Assembly (NCBI GenBank): GCA_021613535.1
Contig: CP075494.1
Location: 12,214,001-12,278,000 of the forward strand
Direction of reading: 5' to 3'
Source of the DNA: Adineta vaga
Lineage: Eukaryota; Animalia; Rotifera
DNA: 64,000 nucleotides
The notes below the pieces were generated by a model. That model did not search any database. It was not told the origin of the DNA and saw only the letters and a list, made by a program, of their open reading frames with translations. Shown piece after piece: positions 46,216 to 60,824 of the stretch. How positions within the stretch are numbered: position 1 is the stretch's first letter; each line of letters opens with the position of its first letter. The translations under genes were made by a program, and so were the position numbers.

Positions 46216-48472
46216 TTATTTATTAGGTATTTCCCATTGAAAACCTAAATTTTTCTTCGTAGTATCGAATGATTTTTTGTCTTGACTACGTGATTTTCTT
46301 TCGCCATTACTATTTGAACTTTCCGTTTTCCGATAACCTTGACTCCATTCATCGAATCGTTTCATTTCATCCGCATAAACCTGAATTCATATTTTTAGTT
46401 TCGAAGAAATAAATGAAATCAAAATTTACTTTTTTCAAAGGATATGTATTACGTCCATTTTCGTCCATATATGAAATAACACGACCAGCATAATCTTGAA
46501 ATTGTTCTCGTTCAATTTCGTTCATTTGTTTTTCATTTTGAACTTCATCAACTTCACTAGTTTTCAATCCATGTTCACGCTCTTTTCTTTCTTGCTACAA
46601 AAAAAAACAGTTGCATAGGAATGATTTTCATTGACTGCCATATCATATTGATGATGATGATGATAACTTACCGCTTGTTTCAGATGAAGTTGTGCAAGAT
46701 CGTGAGCGTCTTGATTGCGTTTTTTGTCTTTTTCTTGTTGATATAAATGAAATAATTGATCAGCTTCCCCTTTTTTCTTATTCATTTCTGCTTCTGCACG
46801 ATCGTCCATTTCCTTTTCAACTTCCCGTCGTTTCATCTAAGATAATCGTAACAATATGTTTCGAAAATTCAAACTAATACAACGTACTGTTTCTAATCGA
46901 TGTTTATTGATTGATTGTTGCATTTTTTGTTGTCGATCGAATTTTTCTTGTTCTTCACGAAGTTCTTTTGCTTCTCGTTGAGCTTGAGCACGAAAGATTT
47001 GAGTATCATAATCGGCTTCTGCTCGTTTTTGTAATGTTCCTAAATAACCTGTCATATGATCACGTGCATCTTGTTTTTCTCTAAAATAAACGAAAATCAA
47101 AAACGAATGTATCAAACGAATTAAGTCGATGATTTACTGATGAGCTTGAATTTCTTTTTCACGTCGTATTCGAGCGATTTTTTTCTTTGCTTCAGCATAG
47201 GTACGAAGTTCTTCATCTTCTTCCTAGAAAAACGACAACAGGATTTATAAATAGAGAAAACAACTAGCTATTCATCTTCTTTTACTTCATCCATTTGCTG
47301 TTCTATTTGTTTGATCTTATGTTTATCTTCAAGTGCTTTATCATACATTTTTTTAACATCTTTTTGTGTTAATTTACGATAACGTTCTAATTCCATTTGT
47401 TCACGTGCATATTGTTCAGCTAGATTTTGATAAGCTCCACCTTCTTGGCGATCTTGTTGTTTTTCTAGAGCAGTTTGTGCTCTCTTTCGTTCGATTCTTT
47501 AAAGAACGATAATTCATAAAAGAATACAAAGAAGTATTTCTACTTACTGGTCTAGTTGATATTGAGTTATCTCAGCTCGTTCTCTAGATTGCAAAATAGG
47601 CTTTTTTCCAATGAAAATAAGTATAATCGAAAGACTTACTGTGCTTTTTTCTCACGTCTTTCTTGTTCCGCTTTATTAACATCGTTTTGAGATGCTTGAA
47701 AACGTTGACGTTCTTCTTCTGCATCTGTTTGACGCATTTGTTCAATACGTTTTTTCATATCAATTTGTAAATCACGTTCTTTCAAGACTTCAGTCAAAAG
47801 AAGAGCACTCTAAATGATATTAATACAATAGATGACAACAATTCGAGTAAATGTAAAATGTAAAATTTACATGAAACGTCTTTACACGATCAGTTTCATA
47901 ATATTTTAATTTTTTTGCTTTTTCAATTTGTTCTCGACGACGTTCAGCAGCTAATTTTTCTTCTTCTAAATCTAGTTGTTTTCTTCGTTCTTCTTCTTCC
48001 TGTTCTCGAATCTTCTTCAATTCAAGTTTACGTTCACGTGCACCCTATAACAAACAAAACAAAAAATTAATTCAATAGAAACTAATCCACATACAGCAAT
48101 TGTATTTGGCCAATGTTTCGTCATTTGAGCTGAACGTTCAGCCATTTCATTTTTTCGAGCAATTTCTTGTTCAATAGCATCTTTATCACGTTGACGACGT
48201 TCTAAATTATCGTAGATTCTATTTAAATCACTGCTAGTTATTATACACATTCGATTGAAATCAGCATGATCGGGTACACGACGTTGTTGAGTTACACCTA
48301 ATCGATCAATTGATGGATGAGTAGCTATTGGAAAAATAAGATATCAAAAATGAAAATAGAATTTATTGAAATGATGTTACAAACCGGAAACACTACGTTT
48401 TTCTTTTTGTGTTTTCAGGAATGCACCACCACTTGGTCTTATAGTCGGATCAGGTAGAGTTTTGATAACCAT
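46216..48472 (-). CDS. CFAP210: Cilia- and flagella-associated protein 210 (CCDC173; trichohyalin-plectin-homology domain)
   Basis: HWPNTI, YYETDRVKTFHSALLLTEVLKERDLQI, long E/R/K/Q coiled coil, FQDYA...NTYPLKK, terminal LGFQW. Confidence 0.8.
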
Positions 48473-50811
48473 TCTTCGAAATAAACGTAAGTTATAATAA
48501 TCTTCCTGAATATATCAAAACTTTGAAATCACCATTTTACTCATTTGATTTTGTTTGTTTCTTGGCAACTTGGTTTTATTTGTAGAATATTTTATTGCTT
48601 CAATATATATCACACATCTAGGGATTAGATTCTACATTAATTGAGAGATATGAAATTAATTACTAGAAATTCATCTTTTTAACATAATTATTATTAATTT
48701 AAATTTTATTACTAATGCCATCTGTATGGTACATATCTTTTACGAACAGATATAGATTAATGTTGGACACTAGCCACTAGCGTCATCTTTCTAACTATTC
48801 ATGTTTTTTTCATAATATACCTGTGAGTTTACACATAGATCTTTTGATTACAGAATCAAAATTACAATGCTATAATTCACATGTTACGATGATATTTTTC
48901 ATTCAATAAAGAAGATGGCATCTATTGTTATGAGACCGTTATCATTGGTTCAATATATTCATAATAAACAAATGTTTTTTTCTCTACTTTTCTCGACCTG
49001 TCGCTGTCGTCATCATCATTACAGTTCTCACACACTGTGCTATGCTACAATTCTTTTCTTTCACCATATTAAACAACTTTTCTTCTTTACAAACGAGCAT
49101 ATCATTGATAATTGTATTTAATAAGCACACCATCAAACTAAGACATTCGCGTCTGTTTTCTTCTGGCAAAGATAATCCTTAATGATGAAGAAATTAGATT
49201 CTAAATCCAAAAGTATAAGTTTTGTATTCTAATTGTTTTATTTCGAAAGAATTTCTCTTCCTAGGAATATTCTATAGGAGAATCTCTTTTTTTTCCTCAT
49301 CAAAGATAAAGTAAGTATTGATCTATAATGCAACAGATTCACACTCTAATATTCATTTTCGAATATTTTACTGAAGATAAAATATTTGAGAAGCACATTC
49401 CTACGTCTTTTATCTTTCTCATTCAGGTTATATGAATGTCGAATAGATTCTTTTTTAAATGGTGAACAACAATCATACTAAATTTGTATTCACTATGAAT
49501 CGTAACTCATCATTCTCCTGAGTAAAATGTGAACAGGAAATAGTTTTCGTCATAAAGCGTGATTAATAATCTTTATTCCATAAAGTAATACTTTATTCTC
49601 TAGATGACAAAAACTGTCATTTGTTAATTCTTTGAAGTGGGTGTCGATGTGATTTTATTGTAAAGTATAAACTTTATTTTTAGATACAGAGAAACACCTT
49701 GTCTGATATCGTTCGTCAAATCAATACCACGCAAAAATGATGAATCATTCATATGTGGCTAGAACTTCAACATGGTAAGTGATTCATTTTGTTATTGAAT
49801 AAAAATATTATGGACGCGATAAAAAGTAACTAATTCTCTCGATTGAATCATATGCAAAAAAAAGAATAGATTAGTCATACAGCAACGAGGAAATGAATAT
49901 TTAACTGATTTTTTTTTCTTCTAAATTCGATCGCTGCATATTGAATAGACAGAATAAAAGTATTGATGCATATCATTCATACCAACTAAAATATTCTATG
50001 GCGTAACGTTTTGTCTATGCTTCGCAGTAGTTTGTCACATTTGGTTGAATACGAAGCAGTTGCCTTTTTTCCTGTACAAATGATAAAAATCAATCATCGA
50101 TCATTAGTTTTCTTCTTCTAATCATTTGTTTTTTTCTTCTTTGTACTTTTATCATGTTATTTCCTTCTAGATTCGACTATTACTATCATAGATGTAAGAA
50201 AAGAAAACATGCTTTACCATCTGATACTTATATCTATTGAGAACAAACAACTCGTACTTATTCACTGTCATTATCGCCCTCATCTTTTCTCTTTTTTAAT
50301 GGAATAGAATGACGTCATTCTATTTAGTTTTTAAAATTGATATAAACTCTGTTCAATTAGATTCTTTTTATCAAAAAGAAAAGAAAAAAGCGAAGTTTAC
50401 AAATTTCTTCCTCAAAGTAAAGTCTGGTGTGTTCTTCTTTTCTTCTGTTATCTTATTTTCTTATTTTCTCTTCTACGATGCCCTAAAGATAATAAGAAAG
50501 TAGAGGTCAAAGTCTTCCGTATGTGCAAATATCGATGCTTCATATACAAATGAATCGAATAATTTGATTACAACTATGCCAAGAAGAAGCAGAAGAAGGA
50601 AAAGGAAGAGAACGACAACGACATGCATATAGTATTCATATTACTTTTTATTCGATATAAAACAGAATACCTATAGAAGTAAGCATATGTACATAAATTG
50701 ACAAAAAAAACTATTCGTCCTTGACACTTCTCATTCGTTACTGTTGTTTTCGATTATAATTTCTTTTTCTGTTTTCAGACAAACAAAACGAATTTGAAAT
50801 ATAAACTTCCA

Positions 50812-52271
50812 ATGTTCTCATCATATCGTCGTCATATAATTCATATCTGGTGTTTTTTTATATTTATTTTCATATTTGAAATTATTGCTGGTGGAATTGT
50901 TCTTCCATCAACTCAATCATTCTCTTCAAATCTTTTTATTGCAAATCCAATTGAATATTATGGTCTTTTTTCTACGATAATTATTTATTTTATTCGTCTA
51001 TTATCTTTATTACCATTACCATTAGTTATATGTCATACATGTGGTTTACTTTTTTATAATATCTTTCCTGAGCGACCTGAATTACAAAATTCACCATTAT
51101 TAAGTCCGAAAATTTGCATTCGTGTTGTTACACGTGGTGATTATCCGGATTTAGTACGAACAAATGTTAAAAGAAATCTTGAAACATGTGCAAAAGTTGG
51201 TTTAAATAATTTTCATTTGGAAATCGTTACGGATAAACCGATCAATGCGACGAATTTACCAATGGGTATGGTTCGACAAGTTGTTGTTCCTCATGATTAT
51301 CGAACAAAGACAGGTGCACTCTATAAATCTCGTGCATTACAATATGCTTTAGAACCAGATGTCAATCAATTATTACCCGATGATTATATTGTTCATTTAG
51401 ATGAAGAAACTTTATTAACAGAAAATTCCGTTCGTGGAATTTTAAATTTTGTTAATTCACATGAATACGATATTGGACAAGGTTTGATAACATATGCCAA
51501 TGAAACAATTGTTAATCATATAACAACATTAGCTGATAGTATACGTGTTGGAGTTGATCTTGGATGTTTACGATTTTGTTTGAAAAAATTACATCGACCA
51601 CCGTTTTTATTCAAAGGATCATTTGTTGTATGCCGAGCTGGATGTGAATTTGAAATTACATTCGATAATGGAAGAGCTGGATCAATCGCTGAAGATACAT
51701 ATTTTGCAATGTCGGCCATGGCAAAAAATAAGAAATTCGGATGGATTGAAGGTTTATTTGAATAAATACATGATTTTAAGATAAATAGATTTCTTTTTTT
51801 TTTATATCTGTAGGAGAAATGTGGGAGAAAAGTCCATTTACATTGACAGATTTTATCAAACAACGTAAACGATGGCTACAAGGAATTTTATTAGTTGTTC
51901 ATGATAAACATTTACCAATTCGTGTTCGTTTTGGATTAGGTATTGCACTTTATTCCTGGATCACATTACCATTAACATCAATGAATGTTATTCTTACTCC
52001 ACTTTGTCCAATTCCATTACATTGGACATTAAATTTTATAATAGGTTATATTGGCGCTGTTAATATATATTTATATATTATCGGTGCAGTTCGATCATTT
52101 TCATTAATTCGTTTAGGTTATGCACAATTTGCATTAAGAATAATTGGAACATTAGCAACAATTCCATTTGTCATTATTTGCGAAATAACTGCCGTTCTTT
52201 GGGGTTTATTTAGTGACAAAGGGAAGTTTTATATCGTTGATAAGCAATTAGGACCCATGGTTAATGTTTAA
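50812..52271 (+). CDS. egh: Beta-1,4-mannosyltransferase egghead/BRE-3 (GT2), 2 coding exons
   Basis: ICIRVVTRGDYPDLV, GALYKSRALQYALE, VHLDEET, GQGLITY, GSIAED, MWEKSPFT..DFIKQRKRWLQG, C-terminal TM helices and FYIVDK. Confidence 0.95.
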
Positions 52272-52717
52272 ATTCAAACAAATCCAAAATTTTCCTGTGC
52301 TTTTTGTTTTTTTTGTTTTTTTCTATATTCAAACACATCTATCATCGTTTGTTTTTCTCCGTTTTTGCTTCCGCCATCGAATGATAACTTTTGTAGTAGT
52401 GTGTTCTTACGTTAGAACCTCAACCTTATGTTTGTCAGATGATGCTTATTGTCGGTTTGTTTAGTAGAATTATATCTACATCTATATCTATATATATATA
52501 TATATATACATATATAATAAAAGAAACTCAAGCAAAATTTGTGTGTGCATGTGTATCTTAAAAGATACGAATATTCTATCGAAATAAAATATTAGTTCTT
52601 CCCTTTTTTTCAGATTTCTTTTTTGTTATTGTTCTGGCCGCGACTGGAGCTGGAGCTATAATAAAGGACGATCACTCATCATCGTCTGCTGCTGGTAGTA
52701 AATCAAAATCGAGTTCG

Positions 52718-53664
52718 ATGAGTTCATCAGAGGAAGGTAATATTACACTAATTGAATATTTAATGTAATATATACTTTGTTTGTAATTGAATAGTTTCGT
52801 GGATTTCATGGTTCTGTGGCCTTCGTGGCAATGAATTTTTTTGTGAAGTTGACGAAGATTATATACAAGATAAATTTAATTTAGTGAGTTCATTAAATGA
52901 ATGAAAAATAAAATGTTGACATTGTCTATTTTTTTGTCCACTAGACTGGTCTCAATGAACAAGTGCCACATTATCGTCAAGCACTTGATATGATTCTAGA
53001 TTTGGAACCTGATGATGATTTGGATAATCAAGATAATCCAAATCAATCCGATCTGATCGAACAAGCTGCTGAAATGCTTTATGGTAAATAAAAACATAGA
53101 TACATTTTCTTCCAAAATGTTTTTACATTAAATTATATTTCAATAGGTCTTATTCATGCTCGTTATATATTAACGAATAATGGCATTGCACAAATGCTTG
53201 AAAAATTTCAAAATGGTGATTTTGGTCTTTGTCCTCGTATCTATTGTGACAATCAACCAATGTTACCTGTAAAAATCTAGTTAATTTCTATTTCTTCTCC
53301 ATACAATTTTCTTTTTCTTTAGATTGGCTTATCGGAAGTTCCTGGCGAAGCAATGGTTAAACTTTATTGTCCTAAATGTATGGATGTCTATACACCAAAA
53401 AGTTCTCGACATCATCATACAGATGGTGCATACTTTAGTACAGGTTTTCCTCATATGTTATTTATGGTTCATCCAGAATATCGACCAAAACGACCAACGA
53501 ATCAATTTGTTGCTCGACTCTATGGCTTTAAAATTCATTCAATGGCATATCAATTACAATATCAGGCAGCTTCAAATTTCAAACAATCGAATTCTAATTC
53601 GATTATTCCAAGTAGTGCTGGTGGAACAACAGCAACAACAACACGACCAGTCATTAAAGATTAA
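52718..53664 (+). CDS. CSNK2B: Casein kinase II regulatory beta subunit, 5 exons
   Basis: [55 protein letters not shown]...KLYCPKC zinc finger, [17 protein letters not shown]. Confidence 0.98.
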
Positions 53665-53846
53665 GAAAACTTTTGAAAAAAGATTATTCCTATCTATCTG
53701 TTATTGTTGCTTGTCCTATGTATATGTCTTTCTTTAGAAACATCAACTAAATAAATACCTTGGAGACAGAGAAAGAAATTAAGAAAAAGATTATTGCATT
53801 GATTTCACTAATGATTTGAAGAGATAAATACTTGGATTCTTTCTAG

Positions 53847-55681
53847 ATGCCGACTGGAGAAGATGTTCGACTTAAGGTTAGTCATGTTAAGAGTAAAAAA
53901 GTTGAAGGAACGTTATATATGACGACTGAACGAATGGGTTGGATGCCAAAGCATAAAGATGTTTTTACATTAACATTTGATTATTGTGATATTAAGTGTA
54001 AGTATAATTTTCTATTTTGTAAATTCTATATTGAACGATTTCTTTTTATCAAGCTCATAGAATTTCATCGGATCAAAAATCGAAAATACGTTTACAAATT
54101 GCTTGCTATAATGAAATGATGACAACATTTCATTTTTGTAATCCGAATGGACTTGATGCACAAAAAAAAGATCGAGATGATGTTTCCGATTTACTCAAAG
54201 TACTTTTACCTGAATTTAAAACTATGATGGATCAAGCACTTGAGATCAAAACGAAAATTTTAAATGAAAATAAAACTGTTTATCAATTATATAAAGATTT
54301 AGTTATAAGTGGTTTAGTACCAGCTGATGATTTCTGGAGTAAATATGTTGATGTAAGTATAGTAATACAGAAAATTTATTTCACAACTAATTTATATTCA
54401 TTATTATTCTAGTTCGATAAATTAACGGAGAGTGCCAGAAAACAAAATACCGGTGTATCTGGTGCATTTTTAACAAATATTCGTCCAGAATCAGGTGATA
54501 ATGGTGGAATTATATATAAACTTAATACCGACACAATTATGTCTATTTTTCGTACATATCCCGCAATTCGAGAAAAATATGAACAAAATGTGCATACGGG
54601 TCATATGAATGAAGCTGATTTTTGGCGAACATTTTTTCAATCACATTATTTTACTATGGATCGAATGAATCCAACACATTCACGTGATCTTTTTTCGGAT
54701 TGTATTAAACGAGATGATGATAATATGCATGATGAAGCAGAACGAGCTAGTCGAAAAGCCATGGCTGTCATTGCACCTGAAACTAATGACACAAGTGAAA
54801 TTGGTTATGGTGTCAATGAAAATACTGGTGATACAACAGGAAAAAATGATTTAAATAAAAATCTCATTAAACGATTCAATTTTCATTCAACGATGATTCT
54901 TAAAAGTACACTTGGTAAAGAAGTTATTAATGATTCAACAGCAACAGCAACAACAACAACAACAGCAACGAATAGAATGGAAACGATTGATGGAAATCCT
55001 CCTGCTGATGATGATAATGATGATAATAATGTTGCTAAGAGATTTAAACCGGATGATGATTTCGAAGATTTACGAAGTGAACAACAAGAAGAAAATCAAA
55101 CATTAAGACTAGTCAATCCTGAAAGATATCTTCGTGCGCCGACGACTGATCGTTCACAGAAAACTGCAGTTGCACAAATACCAACCAATCTGAAAAATTT
55201 TAAACAAGAAATGAACAATTGGCATGCAAATACAGAATTAAATTTGAATTCTCATCTTGCGCATAAGATTGTTAAAGATTTAACACCTGGTGGAGCGCTG
55301 ATGCATGGAACAACACCACAGACATTATCACAAATTGTTCCACAAGCAATTCAAGAAGAAATGCAAACGATTTATATATCATTAAGTGAACTTCTTCGTC
55401 ATTTTTGGTCATCATTTCCACCAAGTTCTCCTCAAATTGAAGAAAAAGTTCGTTGATTTCTTCATTTACTAATTCATTTCTGTGATTTCTATTAGATTCA
55501 TCGTGTTCATGAAACTATCGAACGTTTTCGAGAAACTCAAATCAATGCATTCAAAGAAAAAGTATCAACTGATCTTCTAACAGATTTTCATTTGGCCGGT
55601 CATATGGAAGATCTAATTGATATAGCAAATAAAAAATATCAGCAATGGACTAAAACATCAACATCAACTGGACGAACTTAA
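53847..55681 (+). CDS. GTF2H1: TFIIH p62 subunit (PH plus BSD domains), 4 exons
   Basis: N-terminal PH-like KKVEGTLYMTTERMGW...FHF; QLYKDLVISG...DFW; IFRTYPAIREKY...FWRTFFQSHYF; IKRFNFHSTMIL; LTPGGALM; ELLRHFWSSFP. Confidence 0.93.
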
Positions 55682-55806
55682 GTTTTAGAGAAAAAAGCTT
55701 TTCTTTCGTTTATTGCGCGTGTATAAAAAAAAATATTAAATAAAACAGAATTTAATTCATCACACAAACGTTTACTAATATTGAATTTAATCACATGAAT
55801 AGTTTT

Positions 55807-58800
55807 CTATTTTGAACGTCGAGCAAAAAACTAGAAGGAAAAATTTATGAAACATGTTTTCCTAAAACAAATCATACTTGTTCAATTGAATTAAATGCTT
55901 GATTGAAATTATTCATTTGTCGAAAGCTAGTTGCTAACCATTGAGGTAATTTTGATGGGATATTTGCTTTACCATATCGTTTATCAATCAAAAGAAGACA
56001 AGCATAATCACCACGATGGCGAATAGCTCGTCCAATACTTTGATTAATTGCTTTCCAACATGTATTTTCATAATAAGCACGACCAGTATTATCACTTGAT
56101 GTAGTCGATTTAATTTTCATTGAATCCAAATAGCGCATTTTTTCAATCATTTCAGCTGAACCAATATTTGGATATGGCATACCAACAATACAAACACAGC
56201 GTGCTAATTCATCAGAAAAATTAATACCTTCACTCATTTTACCACCAACTATCGAAAAAAGTAAACCACCAGTTCCATTCTAATACAAATATCTCATTAG
56301 AAAAGGAAAAAAGGAAATATTGAAACAGTACTTTAATTGATTTGGTATAATTTATAAGAATCTTATCAACATCACTTGTACGTTTTGGTTCCATAAAGAT
56401 CTAGACAGAAACAAGTATATATCTTAAGAAAATTTCTTTTTCAAACCTTCTTTTTTGTCACAAGTTTACTCAACACCTGAGTTTTTTCCAAATATGCATA
56501 TGTTTTCTGTAAATGATCATAAGAACAAAAGAAAACGACAAGACCATCTGGTATTGTCGAACAAAGTGATACAAGAACACGACCTAATTCATCCATCTAA
56601 ATCAGAAATAATTTAAGCATAAAAGTCAAAAAATAAAACTTACCATCGCGGTATTTGAACGATTAACAGCAGTAAATTCAAATTCAATATTTTTTGGACC
56701 TGATGGAAGAGCAATAGCTAATACATTATCAGGAGGAACAATATGATCTGAACGAGAAATAAATCTATTAATACAAAAGAAATTTATCGTCACAGAGAAA
56801 GTACTGCATGATAGTTGACAGATTTTTTCTTCGGGTTGACCACAAGCCAGAAAGAGATGATCGATAAATTCACTTATCTATAAAAATTTCGAATAGATTA
56901 GATAGAAAAAATGTTGATTAATTACAGGTCTCATTGTTCCACCTATAGAAAAAAGGATATGTAGAGTATTATGATATTTTCAACAACGATGGGGATAAAT
57001 TTTACCAGCAACAATAACAGAACGAGCTTCATTAACAATTTCATGAAAGAATGCTGATGTTCTTAGTGCAAAAAATTTAATTGAACATTGACCAAGAGTT
57101 TCTAGAAAAGAAATTATCATAAAATCAAAGCAAACACCTGTTGAATAAACCTTTAATAGTAACAATAACTTTTCCATCATTACGTGGATTTGTTAAAGCT
57201 TCGAGAAATTGTGCGAATATGGCAAATGAATTGGAAATTCGATATTCTGGTGATTCTAAATGTAAGTACAATCATTGTTTTAGATCTAAACTTGTAAGAA
57301 TATAGATAACAGAATTTCTTTTACCTTTATTAAGTTGATCATCATCAGTAGTATTTATTTGTGGTTGTTTTTGTAAAGTTTTCTTTTGTAATAATTTTTG
57401 CAATGCACTTTCATTTGTTTTCTTCTCGTCAGATATTTGATCTTTATTCACAGGATACTTCGACATAAAACCATGTAACTACAAAAACGAAGCAATATTC
57501 TTCTATTTATTAGTAAAAATTGTTTGTCAAAACCTTTTTAGTTATTTCATTGTTTTTAATATAATCAATAAGTTGAAATAGATTTACATGAATACTAGCA
57601 TCACATAAATAATCAATTAAATCGAATGTTGAAGATGTTTCTAAAGTATTTAAATTCTTCTATCAAATCATGATAAAATCATAGGCAACTAACCTGTTGA
57701 ATTCGATGAAACAACAAGATTACTCCATTTTTCACTATCGTATGTTGATGGAAGATTTTCTTTTGCTAAAATAATATTCAAATGATAATAAAAATATTCA
57801 TTTGTTTTCCGAAGATCTATTTACAGCATAATGTTTTCATTAGATTGATTTGTACATCTAATAATTGTTTGATTGAAAGTAAATTTTGTGCTGTTAATCG
57901 AGCTTTATATTTTTCATGATAACGAGATAATTGTCCATAAGAATCGATTAACTAAAGCAGAATTTTAAGAGAAGAAAACTATAGAGATTTTCTATTCTAT
58001 TCTTTTCTACTTGATTTCCATTTATTTCATTCGAATGCATCGAACAGATAGCATCAGGAAGGTTATGCGCTTCATCAATAATTACAACATTATCACGCAT
58101 TTCAATACCACATGCTTCACGTGTAGATTTATGCATTAAAGTTTGATAGGGTAAAATAACAAGATGAGCAGCAGCAATAGCAGCTCGTGTTGCATAATAA
58201 GGACAACTATTCAATTCACGGCCAAGTTTAACTACGTCTTCTATATCTTGAGCATCACCCTAAAGAAAATATACTTGATAAATCGACCGATAAATTCATT
58301 TTCTTACTAGAATATCATTTGATAAACATTCAACACGATCTTGTTGTAAAAATGCACATCCACATGCTGTTTTTTGTCGTTTTCCTTTCGTTGTTTTTTC
58401 TACGAGAATTCAACAGAATATTTTGTTTCTTTTCCTAAACATATAGAAGCATTACTTTCTTTCTTTTGTTTTTGTAAATCAAGACATTTTTCATTGATTA
58501 ATGTAATTGATTTCAATTTGAGTACGGACTCATTAATACATAGATTCTAAAGAAAACAAATAAGATTCGAAAGGATTTATTCGAAAAGATTTACTTGACG
58601 TGATCCAAGTGCAACTAAACGTAATTGTTCAATATATTTTGTTTTTTGAATTTCGCCGATAAATTGTGAGATTTGAGAATGTGTACGTGTACAAAAGAAG
58701 ATCTATGAAAGAAAATTTTGATCATTATTGATCATGAAATCATCGTGTACTTTTAGAACATGGGCTTTTTTCTCTCGTAGGTTTGTTTTATCAGTTTTGA

Positions 58801-60435: not shown

Positions 60436-60824
60436 ATGAGTAAGTTTTATAGATTATGATAGAATATAGTTTGAAAGTTTTCATATTTGTGTACAGATTA
60501 TTTAACAAACAAAATTGAAGCTAAACTTGGCTTAGATTTAAATCATGATGGTAGAATTGGTGGACCAGGATTAACTGCTAAACTTGAAAAAGCTACCCAT
60601 GTTGATTTCAATCGTGATGGCATCATTGGAGGATATCGACCATCACCAGGCGGAGGTAATTTTTTGTTTTCTTTTTAGATAATTATTTATGTGCTTTATT
60701 AATAGGTTTAATTGGTAAAATTGAACGAGCAACACATATTGATATCAATAGAGATGGATTTATTGGTGGTCGTCCTGGTTATTATTATCCTCAGCAACAA
60801 TGTCATAAGAAGAAGAAGCATTAA
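60436..60824 (+). CDS. 93-aa protein with three DxNxDG-x-IGG repeats (putative Ca2+-binding loops), 3 exons
   Basis: ATG A|gtaagt..., then MNYLTNKIEAKLGLDLNHDGRIGG...KLEKATHVDFNRDGIIGG...KIERATHIDINRDGFIGG...CHKKKKH*. TATA at ~60350 and AATAAA at ~60963. Confidence 0.8.

Follow-up and report, generated by a model that had tools for sequence, protein, structure and literature searches.

The locus described here raises the question of whether three unrelated housekeeping genes, lying head to tail on chromosome 5 of the bdelloid rotifer Adineta vaga, are transcribed together and then resolved into separate messages by spliced-leader (SL) trans-splicing. The genes are egh, CK2beta and the gene for TFIIH p62 (GTF2H1), and they lie within a stretch of 64,000 nucleotides (contig CP075494.1 of assembly GCA_021613535.1, positions 12,214,001 to 12,278,000), which we refer to as the window; positions are those of the window, and features lie on its plus strand unless stated otherwise. 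An initial annotation, made from the sequence alone, had proposed a polycistronic transcript resolved by SL trans-splicing. Sequence reading and Pfam matches agree with it that the three genes are real and share a strand, and every coordinate given in it is correct. In the reading that we favour, at a probability of about 0.5, the trio is a tightly packed array of SL trans-spliced genes, most likely an SL-resolved operon of the kind known from tunicates and from the SL1-type operons of C. elegans.

The first step is to establish what happens at the acceptors in front of the two downstream genes. RNA data were used in the form of assembled contigs from four runs of four studies, X1, X5, X19 and X22, placed on 50000-55900; transcript starts, poly(A) tails and exact poly(A) sites are invisible in such contigs. 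That the runs represent RNA follows from the skipping of seven plus-strand introns and one minus-strand intron with GT..AG ends, with all four CK2beta introns skipped in each of the four runs, and from the zero depth over 50197-50590, in the middle of the long first intron of egh, again in all four. Immediately before 52612 and before 53845, contigs of X5 and X19, two independent studies, carry the same loose end of 9 letters, CTTACCAAG. As the AG that follows is common to the leader and the genomic acceptor, the junctions are placed at 52613|52614 and 53846|53847, and 11 of the ~23 letters of the leader are visible in the contigs.

These letters can be traced to genes in the A. vaga genome (100.8 Mb in six contigs were searched). 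The 13-mer composed of the 11 leader letters and a following GT has 54 copies, compared with 0-2 for a reversed control. The SL-RNA copies inspected read ...GCTTATTACAACTTACCAAGAG|GTAAAT, followed by ~80 nt of conserved sequence, and represent one leader family with near-identical exons in which the last 11 letters are invariant. Since the 11-mer in the contigs is identical to the last 11 letters of the leader exon in 54 SL-RNA genes, CK2beta and p62 are SL trans-spliced at 52613|52614 and 53846|53847, respectively. This bears out the SL half of the polycistronic proposal, which had named 52614 and 53847 as the places where the leader should be attached. A common leader at the 5' ends of messages and small SL-RNA genes with a leader exon and a GT donor are the defining parts of the bdelloid SL system, and both were found. 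The system, which the initial annotation had also pointed to, has been known since 2005 and adds a 23-nt leader from ~100-nt SL RNAs to >50% of mRNAs, according to PMC1925144; the leader at the present locus belongs to that system (Pouchkina-Stantcheva & Tunnacliffe 2005, as cited in PMC1925144). The bdelloid SL literature searched describes the leader and no rotifer operons.

The SL-RNA genes have an arrangement of their own. The 54 copies mostly form head-to-head pairs with the 5' ends of the leaders ~134 bp apart (e.g., C1:1639465-1639645), which suggests shared divergent promoters, and clusters of them are found at C5:9.88-9.93 Mb and C2:8.68-8.69 Mb. No Rfam family was found for the SL-RNA genes; a match of one pair to the plant family MIR821 was discarded, being sub-threshold (128.6 bits vs 249) and driven by hairpin structure, not by sequence.

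The leader is probably also used by the first gene of the array. Contigs joined at 50778 have 59-102 other letters attached in all four runs, and the last 30 of these map uniquely to 49744-49773, which assigns to egh an extra non-coding 5' exon at 49684-49774, bounded by a strong acceptor (before 49684) and a GTAAGT donor (after 49774). Conservation of this exon extends to A. steineri and Rotaria. Intron 1 (49775-50778) comes next and, at 1004 nt, is unusually long for the A. vaga genome. The maximum of foreign letters on contigs of egh exon 2 is 101-102, corresponding to the 90 letters of exon 1 and 11-12 more. These 11-12 letters equal the limit to which the leader is seen at CK2beta and p62, and the lengths of the loose ends thus indicate that the egh 5' exon is probably itself SL trans-spliced. 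A 12-codon upstream open reading frame lies at 49737-49774 + 50779, its TGA being formed across the junction of exons 1 and 2.

The next question is how closely the RNA of each upstream gene approaches the following acceptor. In the case of egh, contigs are unbroken from the coding region over 51926-52614 (X1, X19) and 51926-52612 (X5), with the X22 contig ending at 52455; because the contigs of three studies reach within one base of the junction, there is no untranscribed gap between egh and the CK2beta acceptor. The 3' untranslated region (UTR) of egh (52272-52613) takes up the whole spacer and contains, besides the AATAAA at 52516-21, a second one at 52583-88 that the initial annotation had missed and that lies 24 nt upstream of the CK2beta acceptor. 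Egh RNAs that extend to this acceptor are either polyadenylated messages or processing intermediates, and the contigs are compatible with both. The CK2beta contigs end at 53771 (X19), 53782 (X22) and 53788 (X1), i.e., 58-75 nt upstream of the p62 acceptor. To the extent that contigs blind to exact poly(A) sites can place them, the upstream 3' ends are accordingly found at 52612-14 and 53771-88, each with an AATAAA (52583-88 and 53750-55), and ~0 nt and 58-75 nt, respectively, separate them from the following acceptor on the same strand. Measured from stop to ATG, the gaps are 446 nt between egh and CK2beta, including the 104-nt CK2beta 5' UTR, and 182 nt between CK2beta and p62.

The unspliced contigs bear on a reservation made in the initial annotation, namely that the acceptor at 52613 is an ordinary cis acceptor paired with the GT at 52553. 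The GTATCT at that position and the resulting intron length of 61 nt, which is typical of A. vaga introns, would allow this. Contigs nevertheless run unspliced through 52553-52612, and none of the four runs reports a 52552>52614 joint, whereas the true introns of about this size are all reported; furthermore, the letters that precede 52612 are those of the spliced leader. The unspliced contigs and the leader junction contradict a cis intron at 52553-52613 as the main form, and we regard this explanation of the acceptor as highly improbable.

The same region decides what becomes of the regular spacing on which the polycistronic proposal had partly been built. The elements themselves are where they were said to be: AATAAA at 52516-21 and 53750-55, a pyrimidine tract with AG ending at 52613 and 53846, and the p62 ATG at 53847. 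The near-equal distances of 92 and 91 nt from AATAAA to acceptor, in contrast, are no more than expected by chance. Three findings lead us to reject their interpretation as a regularity: the second AATAAA at 52583-88, the extension of RNA contigs beyond 52521 to 52612-14, and a distance to the p62 acceptor that varies from 91 to 170 nt across species (91 in A. vaga, 98 in A. ricciae, 153 in A. steineri, 159 in R. magnacalcarata and 170 nt in Rotaria sp. Silwood1). The hexamer is also frequent, with 271 occurrences of AATAAA in the window. The absence of GT from 53756-53846 was confirmed by sequence; it is a property of A. vaga only, since 1-5 GT are present there in the other species compared. 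The placement of the acceptor directly before the p62 ATG is likewise as proposed, and is kept: a pyrimidine tract and AG abut the ATG in five of five species. At p62, the leader constitutes the entire 5' UTR.

The spacer between CK2beta and p62 (53789-53846; 58-75 nt depending on the run) is purine-rich and free of GT, ends in the pyrimidine tract and AG, and is not conserved. Between the CK2beta stop and the AATAAA lie 88 nt that are strongly conserved in Adineta and Rotaria, most columns being identical, whereas the sequence that follows the AATAAA is unalignable even among Adineta species. From this contrast between spacer and flanking UTR it follows that the spacer holds no conserved promoter element. 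In X1, X19 and X22, the CK2beta and p62 contigs together account for the whole depth of the bin 53743-53939, by arithmetic on the depth tables, and therefore no assembled RNA lies over the spacer in these three runs.

Comparison across bdelloids shows that the arrangement is kept in two genera. The order egh-CK2beta-p62 on one strand, followed by a DEAD_2 helicase gene on the opposite strand, is shared by A. steineri, Rotaria sp. Silwood1 and R. magnacalcarata, all three of which retain both acceptors. The A. ricciae contig begins inside CK2beta and shows CK2beta-p62 and its acceptor only, and the Didymodactylos contig begins inside p62 and is uninformative on order. At CK2beta, the alignment shows that conservation begins at the acceptor and continues through the 5' UTR (52614-52717), whose 5' end is the SL junction. 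The 3' UTR of egh contains a conserved block of ~75 nt (~52374-52449), present in all species and partly in a second copy of the locus on chromosome 2, which keeps a constant distance to the egh stop and not to the CK2beta acceptor.

Public gene models for A. steineri and two Rotaria species present the first two genes differently, as a single fusion gene of egh and CK2beta. These models have 710-738 aa and contain both Pfam families (L017 4037-6758, L019 3332-6720 and L023 3361-6752), and the CK2beta 5' UTR is indeed open in frame with the ATG, its indels being multiples of three. An egh stop codon is, however, present in every copy compared, 52613|52614 carries the leader, and the contigs contain no joint from egh to CK2beta. 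The CK_II_beta match begins at profile position 1, a few residues past the ATG at 52718, and CK2beta of other animals has MSSSEEVSW as its N-terminus. In the 5' UTR, indels fall in GCT repeats, and substitutions show no third-codon-position bias. We consider a fusion gene very unlikely. A coding N-terminal extension of CK2beta was ruled out on related grounds, i.e., the absence of an ATG from the 5' UTR and leader, the leader junction, the GCT-repeat indels and the Pfam start. The fused models probably arose as errors of annotation, the 5' UTR being open in frame and the two genes closely spaced.

Judged by the criteria in use for other phyla, the trio is a candidate for an SL-resolved operon, because the genes share a strand, the downstream cistrons are trans-spliced to the leader (both of them, in X5 and X19), the upstream 3' end lies at or within ~100 nt of the acceptor, and spacing of <250 bp is combined with SL evidence. 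The C. elegans SL2-type arrangement, in which a special leader goes together with a conserved element in a ~100-nt spacer, was not found: no operon-specific leader was seen, the 11 visible letters, of ~23, being identical at CK2beta and p62. We infer a common precursor spanning the genes. Its two parts differ in strength: co-transcription of p62 with CK2beta is the likelier, and we consider it somewhat probable, while at least partial co-transcription of CK2beta with egh is rated just short of an even chance, and CK2beta may have a promoter of its own in addition.

The rival to a common precursor is that the genes are fully or partly independent units, with promoters inside the 3' part of the upstream gene, a short outron trimmed by the leader, and close packing as an expression of a compact genome. 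We regard this as a serious possibility, somewhat below an even chance, and several observations weigh in its favour and against the operon. No contig of the four runs crosses 52613|52614 or covers 53789-53844, so that nothing in them points directly to a bicistronic RNA. When a two-gene RNA was sought in other sequence data, the matches were genomic contigs, a p62-only transcript and a contig ending 89 nt past egh, and metagenome scans with the conserved CK2beta UTR motifs gave no match. Most bdelloid mRNAs are trans-spliced by default, and because the leader is on >50% of bdelloid mRNAs anyway (PMC1925144), and probably on egh too, its use is no marker of downstream operon genes. The ratio of contig depth between CK2beta and egh ranges from ~1.2 to ~10 across studies, and although contig depth is a poor measure, this hints that egh is regulated apart; the ratio of CK2beta to p62 is steadier, at ~5-9 in three of four runs, the p62 contigs of X5 being too uneven for one ratio. 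Spacers elsewhere leave room for promoters, with 540-620 nt between egh and CK2beta in Rotaria and the chromosome 2 copy, and up to 170 nt from AATAAA to acceptor before p62, and the conserved non-coding blocks at ~52374-52449 and 53665-53755 could themselves be promoters. Outside the trio context, an intronless copy of p62 exists in another bdelloid contig. Finally, the whole region is compact, and since the convergent pair of p62 and the neighbouring helicase gene overlaps as well, short distances alone are not diagnostic.

Synteny does not help to decide. The opposite-strand genes that flank the trio are also syntenic between Adineta and Rotaria, so that conserved order, while compatible with an operon, does not single out the trio; as proof of an operon it was set aside as non-discriminating.

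Other observations speak against independent units. A p62 promoter and start would need to sit within the CK2beta message, as the spacer of 58-75 nt is unconserved. The egh 3'-UTR block tracks the egh stop instead of the CK2beta acceptor, and a UTR element fits it better than a promoter does. The branch point and pyrimidine tract used for CK2beta are located inside RNA that is contiguous with egh, and spacings such as these are read as operons in other SL-using animals.

Under the favoured reading of an SL-resolved operon, RNA polymerase II would start in the divergent region of ~1.1 kb that precedes the egh 5' exon, and would read through egh, CK2beta and p62 as one precursor. The bdelloid leader would be joined to this precursor at 52613|52614 and 53846|53847, and probably at 49683|49684. 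The egh message would end at ~52612-14, directed by the AAUAAA at 52583-88, so that its 3' end would coincide with the acceptor; the CA of the CK2beta acceptor is well placed for cleavage, at a suitable distance from this AATAAA. The CK2beta message would end at ~53771-88 (AAUAAA at 53750-55), and the predicted outcome is three capped monocistronic mRNAs.

The closest counterparts of such an arrangement are the operons of Ciona intestinalis (Satou et al. 2006, PMC1488885). There, as here, one leader serves lone and clustered genes, the clustered genes are unrelated housekeeping genes, and upstream RNA can reach the acceptor AG itself, leaving zero intercistronic DNA, as at egh-CK2beta (PMC1488885). 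The two cases differ in that most upstream cistrons of Ciona have no AATAAA, whereas a canonical AATAAA is found here 24 nt before the acceptor; in that the second junction here has a spacer of 58-75 nt; and in that dicistronic cDNA clones exist for Ciona, while none are seen here. The SL1-type operons of C. elegans (PMC1488885 and its refs 42, 43) resemble the trio in having little or no intercistronic sequence, a canonical AATAAA upstream and a general leader. They belong to a different phylum with an unrelated leader.

Compared with the SL2-type operons of C. elegans and those of Oikopleura, the present locus likewise has same-strand genes with trans-spliced downstream members, and the CK2beta-p62 spacer of 58-75 nt is intermediate between the 23-30 nt of Oikopleura and the ~100 nt of C. 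elegans (PMC1488885), but no operon-specific leader was seen and no conserved spacer element found here. Chaetognaths are gnathiferan relatives of rotifers, and the operons of Paraspadella gotoi (PMC12460157) were likewise recognized by distances of <250 bp and SL evidence, with no operon-specific leader. That study was genome-wide and used reads (PMC12460157), whereas ours concerns one locus and contigs only.

The gene models on which this account is based were searched, and scanned against Pfam, exon by exon. The egh coding exons (50779-52271; ATG 50812, small intron 51752-51813, stop 52269-71) both match Glyco_trans_2_3, at profile positions 1-116 and 121-191, and the product is the egghead beta-1,4-mannosyltransferase, homologues at 81-89% identity carrying the JGI name egghead. 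CK2beta is encoded by five exons (52718-53664; ATG 52718, stop 53662-64; introns 52737-52794, 52884-52944, 53084-53146 and 53269-53322), with CK_II_beta tiled over four of them (profile positions 1-182), and its 3' UTR (53665-53788) contains the conserved AATAAA at 53750-55, with the RNA ending at ~53771-53788. The four coding exons of p62 (53847-55681; ATG 53847, stop 55679-81; introns 53998-54053, 54353-54412 and 55448-55495) give PH_TFIIH and BSD matches, and the p62 exon used as query matches the annotated A. vaga protein I4U23_025868 (556 aa) at 100% identity. The helicase, a DEAD_2/Helicase_C_2 gene on the minus strand, is convergent with p62, and its last exon overlaps the p62 3' UTR (55682-55830, AATAAA at 55739-44) tail to tail. 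Contigs span from p62 into the helicase (55682-55877) across a minus-strand intron at 55831-55877 with CT..AC ends.

Some further observations concern the RNA and its UTRs. Contig ends at 50897, 53625, 55105 and 55108 (X1, X19) continue into sequence absent from the window and from the loci compared; they may be variants, other genes sharing a word with the locus, or chimeric contigs. Both CK2beta UTRs are strongly conserved between Adineta and Rotaria, probably reflecting RNA-level regulation, and both contain TGTTATTGTT (52624-33 and 53699-708). As evidence this shared 10-mer is weak and was not used, the motif being enriched window-wide (7 vs 0.7 expected). A scan of 48000-56500 matched no Rfam family. 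In the divergent region, between a minus-strand gene with a TPH domain and egh exon 1, a block at 48893-48981 is conserved at 74-78% identity to A. steineri and Rotaria, possibly as part of a promoter or as a small exon.

Duplicated copies of parts of the locus were also encountered. A diverged copy of egh and CK2beta is present on chromosome 2 (C2:5328304-5343419) with the order of the pair kept and ~540 nt from the egh stop to the CK2beta acceptor, which fits the published homoeology of A. vaga chromosomes 2 and 5 (PMC8494291). This ohnologous block retains egh, CK2beta and a homologue of window positions 60475-60821, has lost p62 and the helicase, and has ~12 kb of other sequence in between. 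In A. steineri, one assembly has a partial helicase duplicate upstream of the trio (L018 385-1576), and the other (L017) has the TPH-domain gene there, like A. vaga. The intronless copy of p62, with 72% protein identity, is on an ENA metagenome contig of 3316 nt (L025), has no adjoining CK2beta and looks like a retrogene in a bdelloid; an SL-RNA gene lies ~150 nt upstream of it on the opposite strand.

For rotifers as a group, a 2021 survey stated that operons or polycistronic mRNAs had not been reported (PMC7986045), and our literature search found no report of a rotifer operon after it; operons are not mentioned in the paper on the chromosome-level A. vaga genome. In a 2025 chaetognath paper, rotifers are only named, with reference to earlier reviews, in a list of lineages that have trans-splicing and operonic transcription (PMC12460157). 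We put at only slightly less than even the chance that bdelloid rotifers possess true SL-resolved operons, some of them spacer-less, the upstream message ending at the acceptor of the next gene as in Ciona and the SL1-type operons, and that the trio is one of many such arrays in A. vaga, predating the split of Adineta and Rotaria.

The locus supplies exact coordinates for settling the rotifer operon question. If arrays of this type are co-transcribed, operons would be recognized for the first time in Rotifera, in addition to nematodes, tunicates, flatworms and chaetognaths. This would be relevant to whether possession of a leader makes it easy for operons to evolve, and to the origin of the trait in Gnathifera. 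It would also account for the mistaken fusion of gene models in public annotations of bdelloids, and would affect how expression data are interpreted in an animal that serves as a model for asexuality and for tolerance of desiccation and radiation.

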